A stretch of 64,000 bases of DNA from Octopus bimaculoides (lineage: Eukaryota): assembly GCF_001194135.2 (NCBI RefSeq), contig NC_068985.1, positions 9,290,752-9,354,751 on the forward strand, in the 5' to 3' direction. A program made the translations under genes and the position numbers. The notes under the pieces were generated by a model, which saw nothing but the letters and a program-made list of their open reading frames with translations, was not told the origin of the DNA and searched no databases. Each line of letters opens with the position of its first letter. Within the stretch, counting starts at the first letter, position 1. Below, piece by piece: positions 19,300 through 50,150 of the stretch.

Positions 19300-19860
19300 A
19301 TCCGTTTAGTTAGGTGAGAATGTTTTGATAAAATGTAGTTCCATTGCTTTCTTGTACTTTAGGTCATCGACGGGCATTTGAAGAAGGTAAAGATCTTGGA
19401 TCTGCTGTTTCCGCATATTTCCAGATGCTAACTCAGTGAAAACTTACGGAAGTGTTTATATCTGATGTGTTGTCTGTGGATTCTTGCACGTTGGCAAAGG
19501 GAATTGTTGGTTTCGCCAATATAATTTTCATTGCAATTGGAGAATGTTATGCAGTATATGAGATTCTGTGTCTTGCAGTTCATATCTGCATTTGCTTGGA
19601 AAGAGAACCCACTTTTAAATTTTATATGGGAACCATTGTCCAAATATTTGAAGTTGTTATTAAGTGTTCCGCATGTTATCTCAGCAGTCCTTCGTGGAGA
19701 ATTCTGAATTGTTTGTAAGAATTTTTGGATGACGTTCGCCGTTTCGTATAAAGCTATCATCAACCAAACTTTTCATTTTGCTGTTTTGTAGAAGTATTGG
19801 TAGGTTTATTTCTATACTGTGAAAAATGTTGGTCACTCCTGGGACATGTTTATTGATAAA
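19300..19860 (-). mobile_element. Penelope-like GIY-YIG fragment
   Basis: MNCKTQNLIYCITFSNCNENYIGETNNSLCQRARIHRQHI, then EHLEICG. Confidence 0.85.
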
Positions 19861-25850: not shown

Positions 25851-28324
25851 GAATTACGGTAGCACCACACGGTCTACATCTAACAACTAGAATTTAAATT
25901 TCCAAAGTTAGACGGTGGTCTACACCGATATGATAGTCTAATTGTCTAATTCTACTCATAAATACAAGTTCCAGAAGAGTGATAAAGTAAAAGAAAAAAA
26001 ACAGACATAAATGTATTCTTTAAGGAATTTAAATTACTCATCCTTATTTAAACCAACCTTCTTAAAGTGGACTTGAAACTTGATTTTTCCAGTTCACTAA
26101 ACTAACATCCCAGGAAAACAGTAAAGTCATTAAACAGCATTCACTTCTATAACCATTCTAATAGCGTAATCAATAATCTTGCTGAAATTTTTAACTAAAC
26201 AACTTACTACAATAGAATTGGTTTCAAAGTCAAAAATCTACTACCCTGAAACCACCACAAACGTTTCTATTACTAAGAACAATAACAACTTTTTACTAGA
26301 AATCGAAACAGAACGAGAAATATTACATGGTATAATCTGCTCTTCAATTTAATCGTAATTAACCTTATAGCCATACAAACCTACCTTCTTAGAAAATAAT
26401 CCTACTCACAGCATAAATATTATAGAATTTTTAATAAGTATACCATAAAATTATAATAATCTACTACATTGAATTTTGTACAGCCTTAACATCTTCCCTT
26501 CAATGAAAACTAATTTATAGCGGTTAAATTTATTAGAAATATCAATTTGAAATATATTAAACGTAGTTATTGTCCAATGAAATTATCATAAATACTTAGA
26601 CAATGATATAGCTTTTTGTTTCTGCAATAACTAAATGCGTACTTATATAAATTCCACTATCACATACACATATTGAGGAACCCGAATAGGGGAATGGAAC
26701 ATCACACTAGAAATATCTATGGGAGTTAAAGGAGAAGAAAATTAACTACTCCTTTAAATGGAAAATCATTTTGAAAGCTAAATCATATTGCAGAAAATAA
26801 GATATCTTTCCGATGAAAACTTATTTGCAAATAGAATTTTCCGAAATAAATAAACTGAACTGATTTATTGGGTGCACAGAATCTGTCAGTTATTCCTTCA
26901 TCGGACAACCAAAATTTCAGCTCCTAAATAGTATTTATTTAATCAACCAATTTTTACAATCATAACTTTATCCATTCGTGGTTTTATGTTAATTTCTCAA
27001 TTTTTAAATCGTTATTTTAATTTTTGCTCATATAATGTGGTGTGCCTCCATTCTTCACTTTTCAATCTTCTAAAAATTCTATTTCATATTTTATTTGCTT
27101 CCCTTCCACTTACATCTGAGGTTTAAGTTACTAAACAGTCCTTGTAGCTTATTCAGTTCTCCCCTGCAATATCGGACATTTTTTTTTTACCGTGATTCCG
27201 TTAACTACTTGGTTTACATGTATTTTATCTGTCATATATGCAAGTTTGTGCTTCGCTCTTCTAAGACATTTCTAATATTTTATACAGCTTCCATATAAAA
27301 TATATTCTCACATACACACAGTTTTAATTCACTTCTTCCAATCAACCATATTCTTATACACGAGATTAATCCAACACATTTTACTTCTCTTTTACATCCT
27401 AAAAGAACCGCTTACTATTCTATTATATACATAAGCCTTTTATTATAATATTTTATTTTATTTTATTAATTTCCTTAATTTCATTTTACTTATTTACTCA
27501 TTTATTTATTTATTTTGCTACTTCTCTAACTTAGAATTTTCTTTTTGAATCATTGAAAATACTCCGTTTTCAAGTGTGTGTGTGTGTGTGTGTGTGACAG
27601 AATACCCGACGTTGCCCTGCTTTAAGGCATAGTCGATTTAACAGAATAATATTAAATTCCTCTTGAAAAGTTGTGTGACGTGTAAGAAATGAAACCGATT
27701 GCCAATACATGTACAGCAATCTAGTGTCTAATGTGTTTCAGGTGGATGTTCAATACTTAGCGGCGTTTTGTCCGTCTTTACGTTCTAAGTTCAAATTCCG
27801 CCGAGGTTGACTTTGCTTTTCATACTTTCAGGGTTGATAAAATATGTAACAGTTGAACAGTGGAGTCGATGTAATCGACTAGGCACCCTCCTGCGAACTT
27901 GCTAGTCTCGTCCCAAAATTTGAAACCAATATCAAAATATATTGCATTAATGAAATTATATAAATACCATATCTAATTCAGCCATATTAAAAAAGAACAC
28001 GTGACTAAGTAAATGTGAATGTAGTTTTATTTCAATTATGACTCTTATTGATGATAATATATTTTATTCTAGAAATACTAATTCTTATATTTCCAAGAAG
28101 TAAAACGGCCACAGAAATAACAAACACTCTTATAACCTATGGAAATGTATGTGCTTGGAGGAAACCCATTAATCCAAACAGTGGAACTTCATTATATGCA
28201 GTATATATTATAAGAATTGCAGTGAGCCCAAGTTTTTTATAATGTACCCATCGTAGCTTTGACCATTCTGAACATTGTCATATCCTCCGAAATTCTCAGT
28301 GTTTATTGATTGTCTATGACAGGC

Positions 28325-30163: not shown

Positions 30164-31021
30164 AATGGGAGTGGTAAAGGTCTGCGAAAGTACAGAGCGA
30201 CGATTAAGAGAGAAAAGAAGGGAAAAAGTACGAGACAAGGGGAAAGGTAGAATGAAAGTGAATGAATTTGGTAATGGAAATGAGAGGAAGTAAAGAAAGA
30301 AGGTATGAAGGGAAAGAGAGAGAGGGGGAGAGACAGACAGACAGACAGAAAGAGAGAAAACAAGAAGCGGTAAAAGTTTCAATGGCGAACAGAAAAGACA
30401 GAAAAGTAGAACGCGATTCCGAAGTGAGGTAGCAGAAGAGATGACGATAGGTGCATGCAAATGAAAGTAGACATGCGTGTAAGAGATGCTTAAAGCATTA
30501 CATCAATTATGAGTTTTGGGAGAAGGTGGGAAAATGCACATATATATATATATANNNNNNNNNNNNNNNNNNNNNNNNNNNNNNNNNNNNNNNNNNNNNN
30601 NNNNNNNNNNNNNNNNNNNNNNNNNNNNNNNNNNNNNNNNNNNNNNNNNNNNNNNNNNNNNNNNNNNNNNNNNNNNNNNNNNNNNNNNNNNNNNNNNNNN
30701 NNNNNNNNNNNNNNNNNNNNNNNNNNNNNNNNNNNNNNNNNNNNNNNNNNNNNNNNNNNNNNNNNNNNNNNNNNNNNNNNNNNNNNNNNNNNNNNNNNNN
30801 NNNNNNNNNNNNNNNNNNNNNNNNNNNNNNNNNNNNNNNNNNNNNNNNNNNNNNNNNNNNNNNNNNNNNNNNNNNNNNNNNNNNNNNNNNNNNNNNNNNN
30901 NNNNNNNNNNNNNNNNNNNNNNNNNNNNNNNNNNNNNNNNNNNNNNNNNNNNNNNNNNNNNNNNNNNNNNNNNNNNNNNNNNNNNNNNNNNNNNNNNNNN
31001 NNNNNNNNNNNNNNNNNNNNN

Positions 31022-31085
<64 letters not shown>

Positions 31086-31266
31086 TGTGTGTGTGTGTGT
31101 GTGTGTGTGTCCGTGTATGTGTGAAGAGAGGGAGAGACAAAGAGAGAGGTAGGGTGTTTATATTTAGGATGTAGAACATATTCAAACAAAAGATAAATTT
31201 GTTTATTGAATATGTGTATGAGTGGATAAAGATACACAAAGAAAAACATGTCTCCACAATAAAATA

Positions 31267-31517
31267 TTGGACTGGTGCATAATTATTGCGGCTTTTTTCC
31301 AACAGATTTTATTCAACAAAAACAATAACAACATGTAACAAAAACATCTTTAAATGATTGTTCCGGAGCATATTCCCCATCTACTTCAATTATTGCTTCT
31401 CATTTGCTTGGCAGACGGTCAGACCGGCAGTTAAAGGTGTTTTTGCTAAATATTGTTATTGTTTTTGTTGAATAAAATTTGTTGAAAAAGAGCCGCAATA
31501 ATTATGCACCAAACCAA
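31267..31517. mobile_element. Mariner-family MITE with ~90-bp TIRs
   Basis: TTGG(AC/TT)TGGTGCATAATTATTGCGGCT...TTTTATTCAACAAAAACAATAACAA at both ends in inverted orientation; left TA. Confidence 0.85.
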
Positions 31518-31649
31518 CATTAAGGTTTCTGATTGATATGTATACGTTTATAACCAATGCAGCTTTCGGAATCAACCAGTGGGTTGGTTGGCTGGTTGGT
31601 TAGTTGAAGGGTAAATTGTTTTTTAAATAAAGAAACCATTTGAATATTC

Positions 31650-31803
31650 AGCCAGAATCGGTAGAACGCGGACCAAAAGGCATTGCGTTGTTTGGTTAAT
31701 GCCCTTTACATTCTAGCTTCAAATACCGCCGAGGTCAGCTTTCTCTATCGTCTATCTGGGGTTGATAAAATCGATTAAATCCTTCCTCCAAATTTGAGGC
31801 ACT
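31650..31803 (+). mobile_element. Decayed SINE family 1 copy overlapping the GPCR stop codon
   Basis: CAGAATCGGTAGAACGCG...TTTACATTCTAGCTTCAAATACCGCCGAGGTCAGCTTT...GGGGTTGATAAAA...CCAAATTTGAGGC is collinear with the family consensus. Confidence 0.8.
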
Positions 31804-32669
31804 CTGCTGATGCATTTTATTGTTCATATCGAAGCTTGTGTTCACATTGCTTGTCATTGATGTTCTGCTGGTCTGCTTACTTAATCGCAATGAAACGAGG
31901 TTGTCGAAATTCCTGTTGGTAGTGTTACTACTTATACCATAAATCTTTACTCTTTGCTTCGATTTGGATTCTAGGCACGGTATGTTAAGCAACCTCTTGA
32001 CAGCTTTAACGAACTCTTTGCTGCCGATCCAGTACACTAAGAATCCTGAACTGGAGTGTGAATGCACCAGAAGGGCCACGAATAGATACACTTCTTCCTG
32101 CAGTAGATCCTTTGGATCGCATGCGATAACAAACACATATGGGCACCAGCAAAACATAAAAACCATAAACAGAAGGAAAATCGTCCGAGATGTTCGGAGA
32201 GTTTCAGCCAACCAAGATTTCTTTCCTCGGATCTGGTTGGTATCGCTAAGTTTACATATATCCATTTTGGTCTTCTGTATCTTTCGTAAGATCAACAGGT
32301 TGAGAACACCGACTGAAAAAAGCGGCGACATAATAAGTACAAGCGTTATGTACAAAGTATAAGCGTGGCTGGCTACCCTGTTCCAAACACACGCATGTTG
32401 TTTATAGTCGTATTCGTGTCCATATAAGCCGAATATATTGCCCGATTCCAACAGGAAGGAAACTAGCCACACCAAAAATATAGTCGATAGGGAATTTCGC
32501 CGGTTGAACATTTTCCCACCCATTTGATTATGGCAAACGAAAATATACCTGTTGATAGTTGCCATGGATAAATTGAGGATGGCGCAGACACAAGCCGTGA
32601 AACAAAGCGAACTGACGAATTGACAGTAGGTTGATCTACTTCGAAAGAACTGTTCGCCTTTGATTATAC
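31735..32669 (-). CDS. Class-A GPCR, melatonin-receptor-like, coding exon 2 (ECL1 to C-terminus)
   Basis: Acceptor TTCTTTTTCAG| at 32670 is phase-compatible (G+GT=Gly), giving 422 aa. Motifs: C3.25, NRY (INRYIFVCH, cf. melatonin receptor NRYCYICH), W4.50, ECL2 YDYKQHAC, CWCPY, helix 8 SKEFVKAVKRLL plus Cys. TGA at 31737-31735. Confidence 0.9.
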
Positions 32670-32839
32670 CTGAAAAAGAATACAAATAAAATATCAAACA
32701 GTACTTCGGAAATCGAATGTGTGTGTGTGCGTGTGTGTGTACACGCATGCACATTATGTGTGTGTGTGAGAGAGAGAGTGGGGAGAGTTTATGTGTAAGA
32801 GACTGTGCGCGGGTGTGCTAGTGTCTCTGCATGTATGTA

Positions 32840-34190
32840 TGTATGTATTATGGACAGAGACAAGTAGAATCTCTGCTCGACTTCATAAACATGTTCTTCA
32901 TGGAGCTGAGAATGCTCGACCCAACAAGGGGTAAAAATGTCCTAGACCTCTGCTTCACAAATAATACGGCGCTCATCCATAATGTGACACCGACAATTTT
33001 CTCGGACCTTAACTTAATAGAACTTATAATGTGTGATCCACAGAAAAATTGCAGACACGCACAGTACTAGAAGCAGCCAATTCTTCTCAAGCCTGAACTT
33101 TCATAAAGCTGATTGGAAGGGTATGTATTCAGAAATAGGTCAATGGAAAGAAACTGGGTCCACCAGTCTCACTACGTAAGATATTTACATAGAGCAGCAT
33201 TTGATGAGAATTGTGGATGACGTTGGTTGGCACTCCGTCGGTTACGACGACGAGGGTTCCAGTTAATCCGATCAACGGAACGGCCTGCTCGTGAAATTAA
33301 CGTGCAAGTGGCTGAGCACTCCACAGACACGTGTACCCTTAACGTAGTTCTCGGGGAGATTCAGCGTGACACAGTGTGACAAGGCTGACCCTTTGAGTTA
33401 CGAGCACAACAGAAACAGGAAGAGTGAGAGAAAGTTGTGGTGAAAGAGTACAGCAGAGTTCGCCACCATCCCCTGTCGGAGCCTGGTGGAGCTTTAAGTG
33501 TTTTCGCTCAATAAACACTCACAACGCCCGATCTGGGAATCGAAACCACGATCCTACAACCGCGAGTCCGCTGCCCTAACCACTGGGCCATTGCGCCTCC
33601 ACGATGCAAGACGTACGCAGTCAGTTTTCTCCAGAGAGAATGTTAAACCATCGGAAGAATATAATCCCCATGGATAGGAAGATTTAATGAGACAACAAGC
33701 AAAACTCTCAAACAGTCTAAATGGGCCCCTAAAGCATAGCAAAGGATCCTATCTCAAACAGACATTGCTCGAGATCGAAAATGAACTCAAACTCTCCCAT
33801 GAAAAGGGGAGGGCAGAAAAAGAAGTCAAGGGTGTCAAAAACATAAAGACAAACTCAGAAGCATTGTATAGATTTGCAAAAGAGTTTACTTCAGAGCGGT
33901 ACAAGATAGGGTTACTGCTCGAGAAAAATGGCTCACCGACTGCAGACCCTTAGAATGCGCAATACAGCAATGTTTTCACACCTCCGTTAGGACACTTGCA
34001 AATAGCCATGCCAGATTAGTTCTTCGGCCCCACAGCTCTACACATTGCGATGGCAATTATTGATAACCTCGAAATAGAGGAAACTGATGTAATATCGGCC
34101 ATTGATGGAATGAACTCAAACTCGGCCACAGGCCCTGGTGGATTTCCAGCAGTCCCCCTAAAGAAATACAAAGGGTCTCATTCTTCGTTT
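32840..34190 (+). mobile_element. CR1/L2-group LINE ORF2 remnant (APE end and linker), intronic, split by a SINE
   Basis: PTRGKNVLDLCFTNN...SDLNLI; KNIKTNSEALYRFAK...IGLL; QYSNVFTPP; SATGPGGFPAVPLKK. Confidence 0.8.
33222..33601 (-). mobile_element. SINE family 2
   Basis: Full-length match to the copies at 5373 and 29763. Confidence 0.9.
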
Positions 34191-34997
34191 ATGAAGCACA
34201 GGTCGTTCCGTTCCGTACGCCGGTCAGAGATTTCTGTAACTGTTTTTAAAAACACGAAAGCCCGATTTGTTTTTAGTACAACGGACCTGTGTTACTTCCT
34301 TTTCCTTGGAATTATTCCTAGGGGACACAAACACTGCCTTTCATAATACACCTTCACCATGTAGTTTATCTATTTGTCTATTTATTTACCCGTTATTCAT
34401 TTTACAATAAAATAAATTTTAAGTTTTGTTTAACGGAAGTTTACAAATTGATTATGTTTACTGACAATATTTTACATATATTTGCATTCAAAATGGCCAC
34501 CTTTTTCTTTCGCCATAACCCTAAATCTTTTCTCAACAGAAATGCATGACTTATCATGTTTACATAATAGGTAAATATAATTGCTGCACCCAGTAATTAT
34601 TTATCCGAAGCTGACTCATATCAATGCTCACAAACCATGTACAACATTTGTTAAAAATTTACACTTTCGACTTTTATTTTTGGTAAGGTGTGAATGTCTT
34701 TATTTACAAAGGTGTCCACTCCTGCAATCTTTTCGATTTAACGATTTTTTTCTTTTCAGACTAACATGTTTTTAAACGTGTTTACTGCTACGAGGTTTTT
34801 GACTAGAATTCTCCTCCCATTACCCAAGACCTACATATCTTAACTCTTAAAAAAAAATACTTGTACAACTATTAAAATGTAAAAAATATAGTCATGACGT
34901 ATTCTTTCCTTCAAAATAATAAGATGAGTGTTCAAATGGCTTTAACATACTATTTCTCCCCCTCTGCTTCTCTCTCTCTCTCATACATACATACATG

Positions 34998-35051
<54 letters not shown>

Positions 35052-35433
35052 NNNNNNNNNNNNNNNNNNNNNNNNNNNNNNNNNNNNNNNNNNNNNNNNN
35101 NNNNNNNNNNNNNNNNNNNNNNNNNNNNNNNNNNNNNNNNNNNNNNNNNNNNNNNNNNNNNNNNNNNNNNNNNNNNNNNNNNNNNNNNNNNNNNNNNNNN
35201 NNNNNNNNNNNNNNNNNNNNNNNNNNNNNNNNNNNNNNNNNNNNNNNNNNNNNNNNNNNNNNNNNNNNNNNNNNNNNNNNNNNNNNNNNNNNNNNNNNNN
35301 NNNNNNNNNNNNNNNNNNNNNNNNNNNNNNNNNNNNNNNNNNNNNNNNNNNNNNNNNNNNNNNNNNNNNNNNNNNNNNNNNNNNNNNNNNGTAGTGGTAG
35401 TAGTAAATTTTGTATTATATATATATATAGATA

Positions 35434-36814
35434 TTGGGTCATCCCATAAATAATGCGGGTTTTTTTTCAATTACATGAGCTAAAAGTTGTATGGGGACGG
35501 GACAAACTACCTGCATCAACTTGCTATAAAAGCAGGTAGTAATTTTACATTGTCCTTATTCATAGTGCAAGTTTTAAAGAGTGCAGTTCGATTTTAACAG
35601 TTATTTTTTCAAAGTTATAATGGAAGTGACAAAGGAGCATATTCGGTATATTTTGCTTTATGAGTTCAATAAAGGCAACAACGCAACGGAAAGTGCGAGG
35701 AATATTAATGCAGTATATGGGGATCAGACAATAAACGTAAGCCAGTGTCAACGGTAGTTCTAGAAATCCCGAGCCGGAAACTACAGCCTAGAAAACGAGC
35801 CTCGTCCTGGAAGATCTTGCAAACCCTGGTGGAAAAAAAATCTCATCGTAACTGCTGAGGAACTTGCAGAGAAACTTGGATTTGGTCATTCAACCATTCA
35901 TCGACACCTGCATGCCATGGAAAAGTCAGTAAATTGGGTCGATGGGTTCCTCACAAACTTCCCGAGTCTAATCACGCGTAGAGAGTGAATGTCTGCTCTT
36001 CTTTGCTATCACGTCTCAGGAATGAACCTTTTTTGGACCGAATAGTGACTGGTGACAAGAATGGGTTCTCTATAAAAATGTCAAGCGCTGTAGACAGTGG
36101 GTAGGGAAAGGAAAAACACCGGCACCCCAGACTAAAGGTCTTTACCCACGTAAGGTATTATTATCTGTTTGGTGGAATATGAAAGGTTTATTCCATTTTG
36201 AACTTTTAAACCCAAACCAAACAATAACAAAGGAGATATACTGCGAGCAGCTTGAGCGGTTTAAGTNNNNNNNNNNNNNNNNNNNNNNNNNNNNNNNNNN
36301 NNNNNNNNNNNNNNNNNNNNNNNNNNNNNNNNNNNNNNNNNNNNNNNNNNNNNNNNNNNNNNNNNNNNNNNNNNNNNNNNNNNNNNNNNNNNNNNNNNNN
36401 NNNNNNNNNNNNNNNNNNNNNNNNNNNNNNNNNNNNNNNNNNNNNNNNNNNNNNNNNNNNNNNNNNNNNNNNNNNNNNNNNNNNNNNNNNNNNNNNNNNN
36501 NNNNNNNNNNNNNNNNNNNNNNNNNNNNNNNNNNNNNNNNNNNNNNNNNNNNNNNNNNNNNNNNNNNNNNNNNNNNNNNNNNNNNNNNNNNNNNNNNNNN
36601 NNNNNNNNNNNNNNNNNNNNNNNNNNNNNNNNNNNNNNNNNNNNNNNNNNNNNNNNNNNNNNNNNNNNNNNNNNNNNNNNNNNNNNNNNNNNNNNNNNNN
36701 NNNNNNNNNNNNNNNGGAGAGTATATTTTAGATTAAAAAAGAACTTTGCTTATCTTAATTTTAAAAAATAAAAGAAGCGTAATAAAACCGCATTTTTTAT
36801 GGGATAGATCGTTA
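35434..36814 (+). mobile_element. Mariner transposon with pseudogenised transposase, partly in a gap
   Basis: Left TIR TTGGGTCATCCCATAAATAATGCGG after TA; ATG at 35620 MEVTKEHIRYILLYEFNKGNNATESARNI..., EPRPGR, VTGD, WWNMKG..HFELL..NQTIT...YCEQL, with stops and frameshifts; decayed right TIR near 36785-36814. Confidence 0.9.
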
Positions 36815-37014
36815 GCCACTAAACCTTTTTCTATTTTCTCTCCCTGTTTATTTTTGCGTTCCTGTCTGTCGAAGAGCGTAGGCTCGAAACGTAAAAGACT
36901 TTCTCACTTCCCGATTTCCGAACGTTAAACTAATACATCTGTTTGTTGCTTACACACCCGTCTTCGTCTTTTGGGGGTTTTTTTTTGTAAATTCTCACTG
37001 TATATATATATACA

Positions 37015-37540
37015 AAGGTTTTATCAAAAGGTATCGGGACTGGTGCTATATAAAAGAAGACTATAATATATTTCAATTTGGCATTTACTGTCCTTCGAAG
37101 GTGACCCTTTCTGAAGCCACACACGTTATTCAGCGTCGTTTCCAATGATGAAAGCATTACTGGAACTCTTTTGGGTGGGATAACTAGCAACTGCCTCTTC
37201 GCATTCTCTTGGATTTCATCATCGTCTTGACATCTTGTTGAGGTTTTCCTCAGCAATGGTCATAAATGCACGATTCGTCACCTGATATGACCGTTTTCAA
37301 AACGTTTCCGTCTTTCTTGACACACCCAAGGAGATCCTGCGCAACTGAAACACGATCTTTGTTGTTTTTTTTTCTCGAGACGACCACACTCAACACACTT
37401 TACTTCCAAGCACAACTATAAACAACGGAAGTGGGCGCGAACGTTATAACTTAGTTCGATCTGTCCCAAACGACTTCACTCTGCGTATTTTAGCTCCGTC
37501 ACCATAGCACCAGTTACGATATTTTTGATGAAACCATATG
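37015..37540 (-). mobile_element. Mariner internal-deletion derivative
   Basis: Inverted ends GGTTT(T/C)ATCAAAA..TATCG..ACTGGTGCTAT; internal sequence resembles a transposase C-terminus (FHHWKRR...EG). Confidence 0.65.
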
Positions 37541-37688
37541 TGTGTGTGTGTGTGTAAGCAATTATGGGGATAAGCAAATTAGACACATCAAATATATTAA
37601 ATATATATTAAGTACATCAAATACAAAATATGTAGCACTACTAAGTGTCTTCTATACTGAGAATATCTGGATCTGATCTCATCTGTGA

Positions 37689-37732
<44 letters not shown>

Positions 37733-38563
37733 TGTGTGTATGCGATGGTTTTTTCTTTTTCTTTTTTTTTATTGTTAAGTAGCGTCGATTTTTACAATTC
37801 TGTAAATAATAATAATAATATTTTATAACCTTAAAGCTTATAAGCGACCACCGCTCAATGACTATAGAAAATAGTCTAATAATGGGGCACATAAGCCCTC
37901 GACGGGAAAAAGTAGGTTTTCCCGTCTATGTATGTATGTATACATGTACGCTCTTACACATTGATTGGTATGTGTTGTCCAACCTACTATCCGGCAGCGT
38001 CCAATTCTCTAACGGTTTTTTTCAAATGAATCAAGTCATAACCTTATCCATCTATTGTTTTCATAATCGGTCATAATGTCTTACGTTTAAGATGATTCCC
38101 ATGCTTTCCCTGATGAGGTTACAATTTTAATATCAAAGATCCCTATGGATCACACAGGTTGTAATCCTTTGAAACATATGTAGGAATAAAGTATGCAATT
38201 ATAACATGCGTTTTCTCCAATCCTTAAATTCTTAAATATACTCAAATACCCAAAATTTCAAGGAGTTCCTGCCTTAAAAACAGGAACTAAACCACAGTTA
38301 TTTTGTGTTCTTTGCTACATTGGTTTCTATTAACCCATTTATTCTATCAGAAGAATTTTTATTCATTAAGATAGAAGAAATACACATAAATATATATATA
38401 TATGCATATATATATATATCTGTATGTATGTATGTATGTATGCATACACACGCGCGCGCGCACAGGTGTGTGTGAGATAAAGTGAGAAGAACATGAATAA
38501 CATCAGCTTCAAGTAGGCACGAAGAAGAATGAAAATCAATTAAAAAAGTTCTTGGAAACTTAC

Positions 38564-38897
38564 CAATAGCACAAGCTGGCATGCTGACACAATTCACGCA
38601 CATGTCGGCCAAACAGAGGTTCATCAGAAATATTCGCCCGACTTTATTTAGCTTTTGGTTCTTGTAATGAATAATGAAGCTGATAGGATTGGTCACCATA
38701 CCGAAACAGGACACGGTAAGCAATATTATGAGGTAGATTATGGCTAAGATTGGTTTACTTTGTAGGAGAGGAGTTCTGTATTGAACAGATGCCGTTGAGT
38801 TGAGAGGAGACACTGTAACCACAGAATTTGATGTCATATCTAGGCTGAAGAACGACATGTTAGATGTGGCCACGTCGTGAAGTGAATCAAACATCAT
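38564..38897 (-). CDS. Class-A GPCR, melatonin-receptor-like, coding exon 1 (N-terminus, TM1, TM2)
   Basis: ORF MMFDSLH...PACAI: N-glycosylation sequons NMS and NST, hydrophobic TM1 with N1.50 (GMVTN), TM2 NLCLADMCV. Strong donor ATTG|GTAAGT at 38563 (phase 1); the ORF past it runs into microsatellite. Confidence 0.9.
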
Positions 38898-39709: not shown

Positions 39710-40930
39710 AAGATGGCAAATTAGCAAAAGCCTCGGACAGAGTACTTCACGGTATTTACTCCGATTCACTGACCTCTGAGTTCAAATCCCGCCGAGGTCA
39801 ATTTTGTCTTTCTAAGTCAATAAAATCAGGTATCAGCTAAAAAAACTAGCATAGATTATATCGATTAAACCCACCCTCCACAAATTTGCTAACCATTTGC
39901 CTAAATAAGATACAATTACGTGCAGAAAGCTGTCAGAATCGTTTGACGTCGGAAGAATTACTTGTTTTGACATATTTCTTGTGGGTTTTATGTTCGCAGT
40001 TCATTCAGTGCCGAATACCAGGGTAGATTGTAACAACTAAGGTCCTCCCACTCAAACTTTCCATGTGCCTAAATTCACTCTCGGATGTTGTTACACATCG
40101 CTAGTTATAATGCACTTCGCACCAGTTCTTAGCTTTCCAATGATGCCTCCCTGCATCTGGGAAAAGGCTGATCAGAAGTTAGTTCGTCACAGAGTAAGCC
40201 GTTGACAGCTGGGTGGATGGCAATAACGTGAAATGAAATGTTTTACTCAAGAACACAAAGCACTGCTTGGTCCAGGAATCGAACACACGATCTAGTGATC
40301 GTGAATGTTACACCCTAACCACCAGGTCACGCGCCCAAACAGGTTTTAAATTAGAAAAACCATTATAATGACTTCAAATCCCGCCGAGGCCAACTTTACC
40401 TTTCTTCCTTTCGGGTTTGATATAATCCTATAATCAATCAAGAGCTGTAGGCAGAGGGTATCGATTCACCTCCTTCCTTAAAGCTATTGACCTCATGCCA
40501 AAATTAGAAAGAACTAAAGGCGGTGGGTTGTCAGAATCATTAGCGCGTCGGACAAAATGCTTAGCGGTTTTTCTTCTAGTTTTACATTCTGAGTTCAAAT
40601 TCCGACGAAGGTTGACTTAGCCTTTCTTCCTTTCGGAGTTGATAAAATAAGCACCAGTTACACACTGGGATTGGTGTAATCGACTTACCCCCTGCCTCGA
40701 AATTTCTGGCCTTGTACGAAAATGTGAAATCATTATTATAACGGAAACGAGGAGCAGAATCGTTTAGCAAGCTGGCCAAAATGCTTAGAGCGTTTCTATT
40801 GGCTTTAGGTTTTGAGTTCAAATTTGTCCTCCTTTCGAAGTTGATAAAAAAAAGAAAAATACCAATCAAGCACTGAGGCCGATTTGATCAACTAGACCTC
40901 CAAATTTCAGGCCTTGGTCATATGGTAGAA
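39710..40930 (+). mobile_element. Cluster of decayed SINE family 1 copies (with a family 4 copy on minus)
   Basis: Repeated B-box and 3' segments. Confidence 0.75.
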
Positions 40931-40934
40931 AGGC

Positions 40935-40995
<61 letters not shown>

Positions 40996-41369: not shown

Positions 41370-42080
41370 AAAGCGACAAGCTGGCACGGCAGAATCGTTA
41401 GCATTAGTAAAGTCGGGCGAAATGCTTAGCAGCATTCTACATTCAGAGTAGAAATTATTATTATTATCGCAAAGACACTAGGGTCGATGTAAACGGTTAT
41501 CTCCTCCCGCCAAAAATCTACAGGCCTTGTGCCTTTAGTAGAAAGAATAGTAAAGTGATGATTAGCAGAATCATAAGAGCATCAAACAAAATGCCAAGCG
41601 TCATTTAATCTGGCTGGTTGTGGACTCAGTTCATGCCTCAGCAGGTTTGCATCTCATTCTTTCATGATCGATCAGTCAAGTACTGGCTCAGTTTAATCGA
41701 TTAACTGATTAATTTGCCTCCACACATTTCAGGCCTTGTGCTTTTGCTAGAAACAGTTATTATCGGCGAGCTGGCAGAACTGGTAGCACGCTGGACGAAA
41801 TGCTTAGCGGCATTTCACCAGTCGCTACGTTCTGAGTTCAAATTCTGTCGAGGTCGACTTTGCCTTTCATCCTTTCGGAGTCGATAAATTAAGTACCAGT
41901 GAAACACTGGCGCCTATGTATTCGATTAATCCCCCTCCGCACAAATTTCAGGCCTTGTGCCTTTAGTAGAAAGGATTATTACTAAAGGCTAAAGTTTTAG
42001 AGCGTCGAATTAATTGTAATACTTTACGTTCTGAGTTCAAATCTCACTGTGGTCAAACTTTGTGTTTTATCCTTACTTGG
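41370..42080 (+). mobile_element. Tandem SINE family 1 copies
   Basis: 41762-41975 is near consensus. Confidence 0.85.
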
Positions 42081-48689: not shown

Positions 48690-50150
48690 CTTTCTTAATG
48701 GCGTAATAGATATAATTAAAATATTGGTAGTTAAAGAGCTGGGAAAAAAACTACCTGCGTGGGATGTTTTTACGGTTGTTTAAGTTTTCGAGTTCAAGCC
48801 TCACACATTTTATCTCTTCAGGGTGGGTGTATAAAAATAAAGTCCCAAAAACTTCCTGTAGTTGATCTAATCGACTATTCCTCTCTTCTCAAATATTGGT
48901 TTCAAATTTTGGCACAAGGCCAGCAGTTGTGAAGAGGGTATGTAAGTCGATTAGATCGACCCCAGTATTCAACTGGTACTTATTTTATTGACCTCCGAAA
49001 GAATAAAAGGCAAAGTGGACCTCGGTGGAATTTGAAATGTTAACGTGCAGACCCACGAATCGCCGCTAAGCATTTTGTCCAGCGTGCTAAAGCCATAATC
49101 AGAGTAATTATATTATTATAAAAACTGTTCGTTACATAATCATACAAGTAGTCCAGGGTGGGGTTAAGTTTGCTGCTCGCCGCCTTAAAATGGAAAAGCA
49201 TAAAGGAAATCATTTGGCCAGGCTAAGAATTTCTCCTCTCAAACATTGCTGCCCTTTTTATAATTGTATGCTTTTCTACTCCGAGCACAAGGCCCGAAAT
49301 TTTGAGGGAAGGGGCCAGTCGATTAGATCGATCCCAGTATGCAACTGATACCTAATTTATCGATCCCTAAAGGATGAAAGGCAAAGTCGACCTCAGCGGA
49401 ATTTGAACTCAGAATGTAAAGAGAGACGAAATATCGCTAAGCATTTTTCCCCGCGTATTAACGTTTCTTATTTCTTTATTGCCCACAAGGGGCTAAAGAT
49501 AGAGAGGACAAACAAGGACAGGCAAATGGGTTAAGTCGATTACATCGACCCCAGTGCATAACTGGTACTTAATTTATCGACCCCAGTGCATAACTGGTAC
49601 GTCATTTATCGACCCCGAAAGGATGAAAGGCAAAGTCGACCTCGGCGGAATTTGAACTCAGAACGTAACGGCAGACGAAATACCGCTAAGCATTTCGCCC
49701 AGCATGCTAACGTTTCTGCCAGCTCGCCGCATTAAGGCAAGAAATATATTCTTCTCTATTCTAGGCACAAGGCCAGAAATTTTGGGTGAGGGGGGCCAGT
49801 CGATTAGATCGACCCCCAGTACGCAACTGGCGGAATTTGAACTCAGAATATAAATATAGACGAAATACTGCTAAGCATTTCGCCCGGCGTGCTAACGATT
49901 CTGCCAGCTCCCCTCCTTTATAATAATTTTAAAATAATTCTATGAGCAAATAAATAGACTTTTTCAAGGATGATATAATGTTGTGATAATCGACCTTAAT
50001 TAGATAACCGATTTAATTATAACACTAAGGATCAGAGTGGCAGACTCATTAGGGGCGTCGGAAACAAAAGGTACCTAAAGACATTTCTTCTGTATTTTTA
50101 CGTTCTGAGTAGAGTTCAAATCTCACTGAGTTCAGCTTTGCTTTACATCC
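48690..50150. mobile_element. Dense SINE family 1 cluster, mixed orientation
   Basis: (+) 48690-48900; (-) 48895-49200, 49270-49470, 49470-49735, 49750-49915; (+) 50030-50150. Confidence 0.85.

Follow-up and report, generated by a model that had tools for sequence, protein, structure and literature searches.

An antisense SINE copy carries the annotated C-terminus and stop codon of a melatonin-receptor-like gene shared by several octopods

Transposable elements (TEs) are known to supply codons and stop codons to the genes of their hosts, as described for the mammalian Alu, MIR and B1 elements and for TEs inserted into last exons (Sela, Kim & Ast 2010, PMC2911107), and most Alu-derived coding exons show little sign of function according to large surveys (PMC6924539). 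In octopuses, short interspersed nuclear elements (SINEs) make up ~11.6% of the O. vulgaris genome (PMC13282606), and the families OK, OR1 and OR2 have been described (Ohshima & Okada 1994, as cited in PMC4758252 and PMC4824008), with OR1 and OR2 listed as members of the CORE-SINE superfamily, which share a ~60-bp central CORE domain (PMC4758252, PMC4824008). Here we describe a decayed SINE copy lying antisense in the terminal coding exon of a two-exon, melatonin-receptor-like gene of Octopus bimaculoides, where it carries the last 23 codons of the annotated protein together with the stop codon (Table 1). The locus was analyzed within a stretch of 64,000 nt (hereafter the window; RefSeq assembly GCF_001194135.2, contig NC_068985.1, positions 9,290,752 to 9,354,751 of the forward strand), in which all positions below are given. 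The literature searches yielded no paper describing this case.

The octopus case resembles those involving mammalian Alu, MIR and B1 in that an antisense short retroposon gives both codons and an in-frame stop, the stop arose by point decay of the element, and the resulting C-terminus is lineage-restricted. In contrast with mammalian TE-derived exons, it makes use of no splice site of the TE and is not an alternatively spliced cassette, being part of the only terminal coding exon. It also differs from most Alu exons, since the segment is common to at least four octopod species, bears the signature of coding-type constraint and resides in a mollusc host.

The identity of the element is clear from its relatives in the window. 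When the window is compared with itself, the segment 31653-31771/82 matches more than 20 other places, and their multiple alignment defines a repeat of ~220 nt. A profile of 217 positions, built from the 37 other copies with the target masked and searched with nhmmer, recovers the copy at the end of the gene at 62.6 bits, whereas the best of 1000 dinucleotide-preserving shuffles of 31640-31830 reaches 4.4 bits; for its coding part by itself (31738-31810), the score is 16.2 bits and the highest shuffle score 3.4. The copy is in the sense orientation on the plus strand, hence antisense to the receptor gene. An initial annotation, made from the letters of the sequence alone, had attributed the C-terminus and stop codon of the receptor to an antisense SINE; this proposal is borne out, both by an alignment to the SINE consensus far better than that of shuffled sequence and by a profile match that covers 31807-31735. 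The same annotation placed the last ~21 residues and the TGA inside the SINE, correctly as to location, strand and stop, but the alignable SINE extends to 23 codons plus the stop. The copy is evidently old: its identity to the consensus, 72%, falls towards the older end of the range spanned by the other copies (65-95%), an internal deletion has removed ~32 nt between two GGGGTCGAT direct repeats, and the final ~20 consensus positions are unrecognizable. A search for a target-site duplication flanking the copy gave nothing better than chance, the best pair of flanks, CATTTGAATATTCA (31637-31650) and CATTTTATTGTTCA (31813-31826), matching at 11/14 positions, which 53% of shuffles equal.

Including the target, the family counts 38 copies in 64 kb, on both strands, with a consensus of 217 nt, and some of them form tandem or nested clusters (e.g., 49266-49915, 40369-40941 and 41377-41987). 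It has the size, the copy number and the dispersion in both orientations of a SINE, and resembles OK, OR1 and OR2 as an interspersed repeat, here of ~217 nt; its consensus shows a B-box-like GAGTTCAAATTCC and a weak A-box-like TTAGCACGCCGG. It differs from these in not being assignable to a named family and in that no tRNA was found, either by ARAGORN in the window or by Rfam at the gathering threshold and, on an intact copy, at E ≤ 10. Against an uncurated MIR consensus, local alignment scored 10 where shuffles averaged 9.7, in what is a weak test of CORE membership. A tRNA origin or a CORE membership of the family is not shown by ARAGORN, Rfam or the MIR alignment. The peptide encoded by the antisense consensus was also sought in other predicted proteins, where no candidate shared enough five-residue words, a result that is uninformative either way.

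The host gene lies on the minus strand and consists of two coding exons, annotated as XP_014781651.1 ('melatonin receptor type 1B-B [Octopus bimaculoides]', 422 aa); in a protein search, the exact 422-aa product was found in the NCBI genome only. Exon 2 begins at 32669 behind an AG acceptor at 32671-32670, within an open reading frame (ORF) spanning 32754-31735 that ends in ...QSASNLEEGFNRFYQPQIDDRES-TGA, the stop occupying 31737-31735. Pfam 7tm_1 (PF00001) is precomputed for the receptor protein, and its best matches in the PDB are the class A G-protein-coupled receptors (GPCRs) MT2 (7vh0, 4.9e-22), MT1 (7vgy, 2.4e-21) and GPR50. By its 7tm_1 fold and its similarity to MT1 and MT2, the predicted product is a melatonin-receptor-like class A GPCR. 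Hallmarks of the melatonin receptor family are an NRY motif after the third transmembrane segment (TM3) and NAxxY in TM7. The first is present (ATINRY); in TM7 (window ~32040-32025), the octopus sequences all have SGFLVY in place of the N(F/C)IIY of the bivalve relatives, with Gly instead of the conserved Asn. Besides this TM7 sequence, the receptor, known here from its sequence, differs from MT1, MT2 and GPR50 in a low identity over the 7TM core and in an Octopus-only tail of 79 residues. The nearest relatives are bivalve 'melatonin receptor-like' proteins with 35-41% identity depending on the comparison, and the alignments to these relatives and to the PDB entries end at about residue 343, in helix 8; among the PDB matches and the HMMER relatives, the 79 residues that follow have no counterpart outside Octopus.

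Table 1. Features of the receptor locus and of the SINE copy at its end (window positions).
Feature	Position	Strand	Basis or remark
Exon 1, coding part (M1 to first base of codon 112)	38564..38897	-	tblastn 100% identity, residues 1-112; then donor G|GTAAGT
Single intron, GT...AG, 5894 nt	32670..38563	-	between the two coding exons
Exon 2, coding part: TM3-TM7, helix 8, C-terminal tail, TGA	31735..32669	-	100% identity to XP_014781651.1 residues 112-422
Non-SINE part of C-terminal tail, ~56 codons after helix 8 (...KRLLN)	31808..31977	-	no alignment beyond Octopus
Donor-like AA|GTAAGC, starting at 31880	31875..31882	-	read from the sequence; frame downstream open without indels in four species
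AATAAA hexamer in coding tail (AAC AAT AAA)	31816..31821	-	candidate early poly(A) signal; ~80 nt upstream of the stop; identical in four species
Decayed copy of the main ~217-nt SINE family	31651..31807 (envelope 31646-31823)	+	nhmmer, model positions 10-197, 62.6 bits, E=1.1e-20
SINE-derived coding segment, last 23 codons (QSASNLEEGFNRFYQPQIDDRES)	31738..31807	-	inside the profile-aligned SINE
CAG (Gln) codon, TAG in the SRR11869384 octopod	31804..31806	-	protein there stops at ...NNKTHQ
TGA stop inside the SINE, at a consensus CpG	31735..31737	-	CGA in 20/27 copies; kept in all four species
SINE-derived proximal 3' untranslated region (SINE head, antisense)	31651..31734	-	first ~85 nt of the 3' untranslated region

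The passage from receptor to SINE is continuous at the level of the reading frame. From the acceptor at 32670/32669, the ORF crosses TM3-TM7 and helix 8 and enters the SINE without a break, and no splice site of the SINE is used. The term exonisation, under which the segment was first interpreted, is not appropriate, since the SINE is internal to the terminal coding exon and splicing plays no part in its inclusion; as a TE within the annotated coding sequence that also contains its stop, the segment is, on the gene model, TE-derived terminal coding sequence. In the frame of the gene, the family consensus reads AGG CAA AGT CGA where the gene has AGA GAA AGC TGA. At position 31737, 20/27 copies have G, i.e., the C of CGA on the minus strand, and 6/27 have the A of the gene. 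The orthologous sequences of O. vulgaris, O. sinensis and a third octopod read AGT TGA, one C>T step away from AGT CGA, O. bimaculoides having in addition a synonymous AGT>AGC change before the stop. The stop is therefore best accounted for by a CpG-type CGA>TGA change as initially suggested, and the 6/27 copies show the same decay. Another codon of the tail, at 31797-31795, corresponds to TGA in the antisense consensus and reads TCA, GCA and TTG in three lineages, making it the most variable of the tail; depending on the alignment, the present ORF may have needed a stop-removing change there besides the stop-creating one.

The SINE is clearly older than O. bimaculoides. The loci of O. vulgaris (L002), O. 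sinensis (L006) and the third octopod (L001, from Logan SRR11869384) align straight through it, with 93%, 93% and 88% identity, respectively; not a single insertion or deletion (indel) occurs in exon 2 or in the SINE across the four species, the TGA is conserved, and the SINE profile also matches the third octopod at the orthologous place. The O. sinensis protein XP_029636769.1 has the same length (422 aa) and the same tail (...QQRAANLEEGFNRFYQPQIDERES). Since the SINE is orthologous in four species, it was inserted before the split of O. bimaculoides and O. vulgaris, dated to 13-33 million years ago (PMC13282606), and is not species-specific. The initial annotation had called it lineage-specific, which holds at the level of the genus or deeper but not for O. 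bimaculoides, given its presence at the same site in O. vulgaris, O. sinensis and the third octopod. The 3' flank of the gene also contains a ~270-bp foldback element resembling a miniature inverted-repeat transposable element, whose 94-nt arms (31263-31356 and 31428-31521) are inverted copies with 88% complementarity, separated by 71 nt. O. bimaculoides, O. vulgaris and O. sinensis all have this element, whereas the SRR11869384 octopod lacks it at the orthologous site and is therefore an outgroup to the other three.

No SINE-free outgroup, from squid or any other lineage, was found: the word-indexed protein search gave octopus sequences only, and an exhaustive search with HMMER added relatives from bivalves and other groups, none above 43% identity and with unalignable tails. 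A candidate orthologue from Logan ERR14857104 (P0007, 43% identity) was discarded, having neither DNA similarity to the octopus locus nor a SINE match. A reconstruction of the tail before the insertion, by removal of the SINE, was likewise set aside as uninformative; without it, the frame reads on for 38, 63 and 16 codons in three species, but crosses an (AACC)n microsatellite of variable length. As to the proposal that the SINE rewrote the receptor tail, the SINE does form the end of the annotated tail, which may have been rewritten or else extended after the loss of a stop.

The substitutions in the SINE-derived codons follow a coding-type pattern. The ratio of nonsynonymous to synonymous divergence (dN/dS, by NG86) is 0.10-0.22 in the SINE tail, 0.14-0.24 in the non-SINE tail and 0.13-0.20 in the 7TM core, all values being probably biased downwards (see below). 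Over the four species, variable sites at first, second and third codon positions number 2, 2 and 10 in the SINE tail, 6, 5 and 13 in the non-SINE tail and 23, 11 and 54 in the 7TM core, so that first and second positions together are 8.3% (4/48), 9.8% and 7.4% variable, respectively, while 42% of third positions vary in the SINE tail. The probability of finding at least 10 of its 14 variable sites at third positions is 0.004. Relative to a neutral reference made of the intron and the 3' flank (32% variable, 49/153), first and second positions of the SINE tail are conserved (p=0.0007) and third positions are about neutral; between O. bimaculoides and O. vulgaris, 6/7 differences in the SINE tail fall at third positions (hand count from a per-codon table). 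In the part of the 3' untranslated region (UTR) that derives from the SINE, the continued frame gives 5, 2 and 4 variable sites; this part is also more conserved than the neutral reference (13%, 11/84; p=0.0016), without codon periodicity. The pattern suggests purifying selection on TE-derived codons, as judged from four species and 14 variable sites and with one species carrying a premature TAG.

From these observations, the following explanation can be proposed. An old copy of an abundant ~217-nt octopus SINE would have come to lie antisense in the terminal coding exon of a two-exon melatonin-receptor-like GPCR gene, by an insertion that predates the split of O. bimaculoides, O. vulgaris/O. 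sinensis and the third octopod. Translation would pass from the receptor's own cytoplasmic tail into 23 SINE codons and end at a TGA born from a CpG (CGA>TGA), and the remainder of the SINE, i.e., its head in antisense, would make up the first ~85 nt of the 3'UTR. The SINE peptide would be under purifying selection in O. bimaculoides, O. vulgaris and O. sinensis, within the presumably disordered tail of the receptor, and a nonsense mutation would have cut it off in one other octopod. Taken as a whole, we consider this explanation probable, though well short of certain.

Several observations weigh against it, and each bears on one or more rival explanations. The first is the truncation in the third octopod, where a TAG 22 codons upstream of the TGA removes the SINE tail: its ORF (P0002, 264 aa, 87% identical) ends in ...NNKTHQ, and the same truncated protein is found on 3 contigs. 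Judged by this predicted protein, the SINE tail is dispensable in that species. The TAG also raises the possibility, a variant of the explanation above, that the SINE first lay in the 3'UTR directly behind an original stop at 31806-31804, retained to this day by the third octopod, and that a TAG>CAG change in the ancestor of the ingroup added 22 codons, which would give the same present anatomy with a different history and age of the coding tail. Such an extension by stop loss accords with the position of the TAG within 3-4 nt of the alignable SINE edge and with the foldback element, which makes the third species an outgroup, so that the tree alone leaves the TAG/CAG polarity undecided. It also accords with the changes on the outgroup branch, which are distributed 1, 2 and 4 over the codon positions of the tail (hand count), a spread that fits relaxed or UTR-type constraint there, and with a tail about as conserved as the UTR part. 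However, 20/27 SINE copies support C as the original base at 31806 (CAG-like), although this site lies at the edge of the alignment, with a moderate posterior probability; TAG is then the extra step, and a derived nonsense mutation in the third octopod is therefore favored. We regard the loss of an older stop as unlikely; the SINE may have entered an old coding tail or else the stretch directly following an ancient stop codon that subsequently disappeared.

A second group of observations concerns the strength of the coding signature. The counts are small, with 14 variable sites and three independent lineages, and the periodicity test behind the value of 0.004 was picked after looking at the data. 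The NG86 estimates of dS (0.2-0.4) are above the mismatch rate of noncoding sequence, which is ~7-9% for O. bimaculoides against O. vulgaris, and the dN/dS values are therefore probably biased downwards. Conservation of the SINE-derived UTR as well (13% against 32%) implies that some constraint may act at the nucleotide level, and the 24 codons upstream of the SINE (31881-31810) have 3, 3 and 3 variable sites by codon position, i.e., no third-position excess (hand count). The SINE-encoded peptide has no recognizable motif. The initial annotation pointed to the phosphorylation, arrestin and PDZ determinants of GPCR tails, whose relevance here is conjectural; a C-terminus ending in -RES is without the hydrophobic last residue of canonical PDZ ligands. 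Finally, both 422-aa NCBI proteins are named 'PREDICTED' and run to the first in-frame stop like any ORF-based model.

These points can be read together as an annotation default without function, in which the ORF simply runs into the SINE up to the first chance stop, the segment has no selective value, whether translated or not, and the apparent constraint is sampling noise or conservation at the nucleotide level. Such a reading would account for a species that truncates the tail, for a SINE-derived UTR as conserved as the tail overall, for the tiny counts and for a peptide without known motif, and it agrees with the little functional evidence for most Alu-derived coding exons in large surveys (PMC6924539). 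It is less compatible with a third-position excess confined to the coding part (2, 2 and 10, against 5, 2 and 4 in the UTR), with first and second positions conserved like those of the 7TM core (8.3% against 7.4%), and with the lack of any indel in 72 nt over four species while the nearby flank has indels. We consider it quite improbable.

A last line of doubt concerns the structure of the transcript. The O. vulgaris annotation CAI9723392.1 (P0003) does not follow exon 2 to its end but departs from it early, after ...ATINR, to continue in two exons located 7-12 kb further downstream, whose product is a low-complexity peptide; its parts lie at 19414-19542, 27261-27431 and 32221-32451 of L002, and the counterparts in the window (~24178-23946 and 19956-19795) are 52-83% conserved at the protein level. 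This structure is probably spurious, or a non-coding isoform. Exclusion of the SINE from the mature coding sequence could come about by splicing at 31880 to a downstream exon or by cleavage after the AATAAA at 31821-31816. The donor-like AA|GTAAGC pointed out in the initial annotation is indeed present, as a fair match (TAA|GTAAGC), the AATAAA is conserved across the four species, and exon 2 is indeed linked to distant exons in the O. vulgaris annotation, though from a different internal donor. Yet both signals lie within conserved codons, which makes their conservation uninformative, and the coding-type constraint extends downstream of both; the downstream O. vulgaris exons encode only the low-complexity peptide, partly conserved in the window, and cleavage after 31816 would produce a non-stop mRNA. 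Exclusion of the SINE is in our view highly improbable, and, like the annotation default, it fits the periodicity less well than does a translated and constrained tail. The next AATAAA hexamers on the minus strand are found at 31313-31308 and 31207-31202.

Further features were noted around these elements. The SINE-derived 3'UTR contains a 10-bp hairpin, AAAGGGCAUU...AAUGCCUUU; the fold predicted for the SINE region in mRNA sense is unremarkable (z=-0.87), and 1 of its 46 pairs is compensatory. Read-through past the TGA, over the 12 in-frame codons that precede a TAA, was considered and is unsupported, these codons having no periodicity and a mixture of synonymous and non-synonymous changes. 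No copy of the main SINE family was detected in the intron by the profile search at E<1e-5; its plus strand carries two short retroelement-like ORFs (33687-33953 and 34050-34346, e.g., ...SATGPGGFPAVPLKKY...), which are possibly fragments of retrotransposons lacking long terminal repeats, i.e., non-LTR elements. Immediately upstream of the acceptor of exon 2, the sequence is rich in (CA)n (32700-32860), and a (CA)n/(TG)n microsatellite flanks an assembly gap, a run of N, just downstream of the gene (window ~30560-31050).

Returning to the SINE as a putative translated part of the receptor, the segment would belong to both the mature mRNA and the protein, and the SINE peptide may have a function. 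Translation of the segment under weak to moderate constraint in the clade of O. bimaculoides, O. vulgaris and O. sinensis is the most likely reading, somewhat more plausible than the contrary. A bolder proposal is that the whole SINE remnant was domesticated in the Octopus lineage as a two-part module, its 3' half giving a 23-residue tail, kept by selection, that alters the trafficking or desensitization of the GPCR and its 5' half a conserved proximal 3'UTR element, the tail being lost by a nonsense mutation in one octopod; we put this forward tentatively, as possible but doubtful.

The locus is a clean invertebrate example of a TE-derived C-terminus, with shared orthologous presence and a coding-type signature, by a mechanism that is not new in kind; the general picture is unchanged, since other animals provide well-documented cases of C-termini derived from TEs. 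SINEs abound in octopus genomes, and the extent of their contribution to cephalopod proteins is a matter of debate; here the origin of the element, the mutation that made the stop and a minimum age can all be read from the sequence of one small and well-delimited case. The naturally truncated orthologue provides a comparison for asking whether a TE-born tail alters the behavior of a GPCR and, should the two-part domestication be true, octopods would offer a natural comparison, with and without the tail, for a TE-born GPCR tail in a cephalopod.

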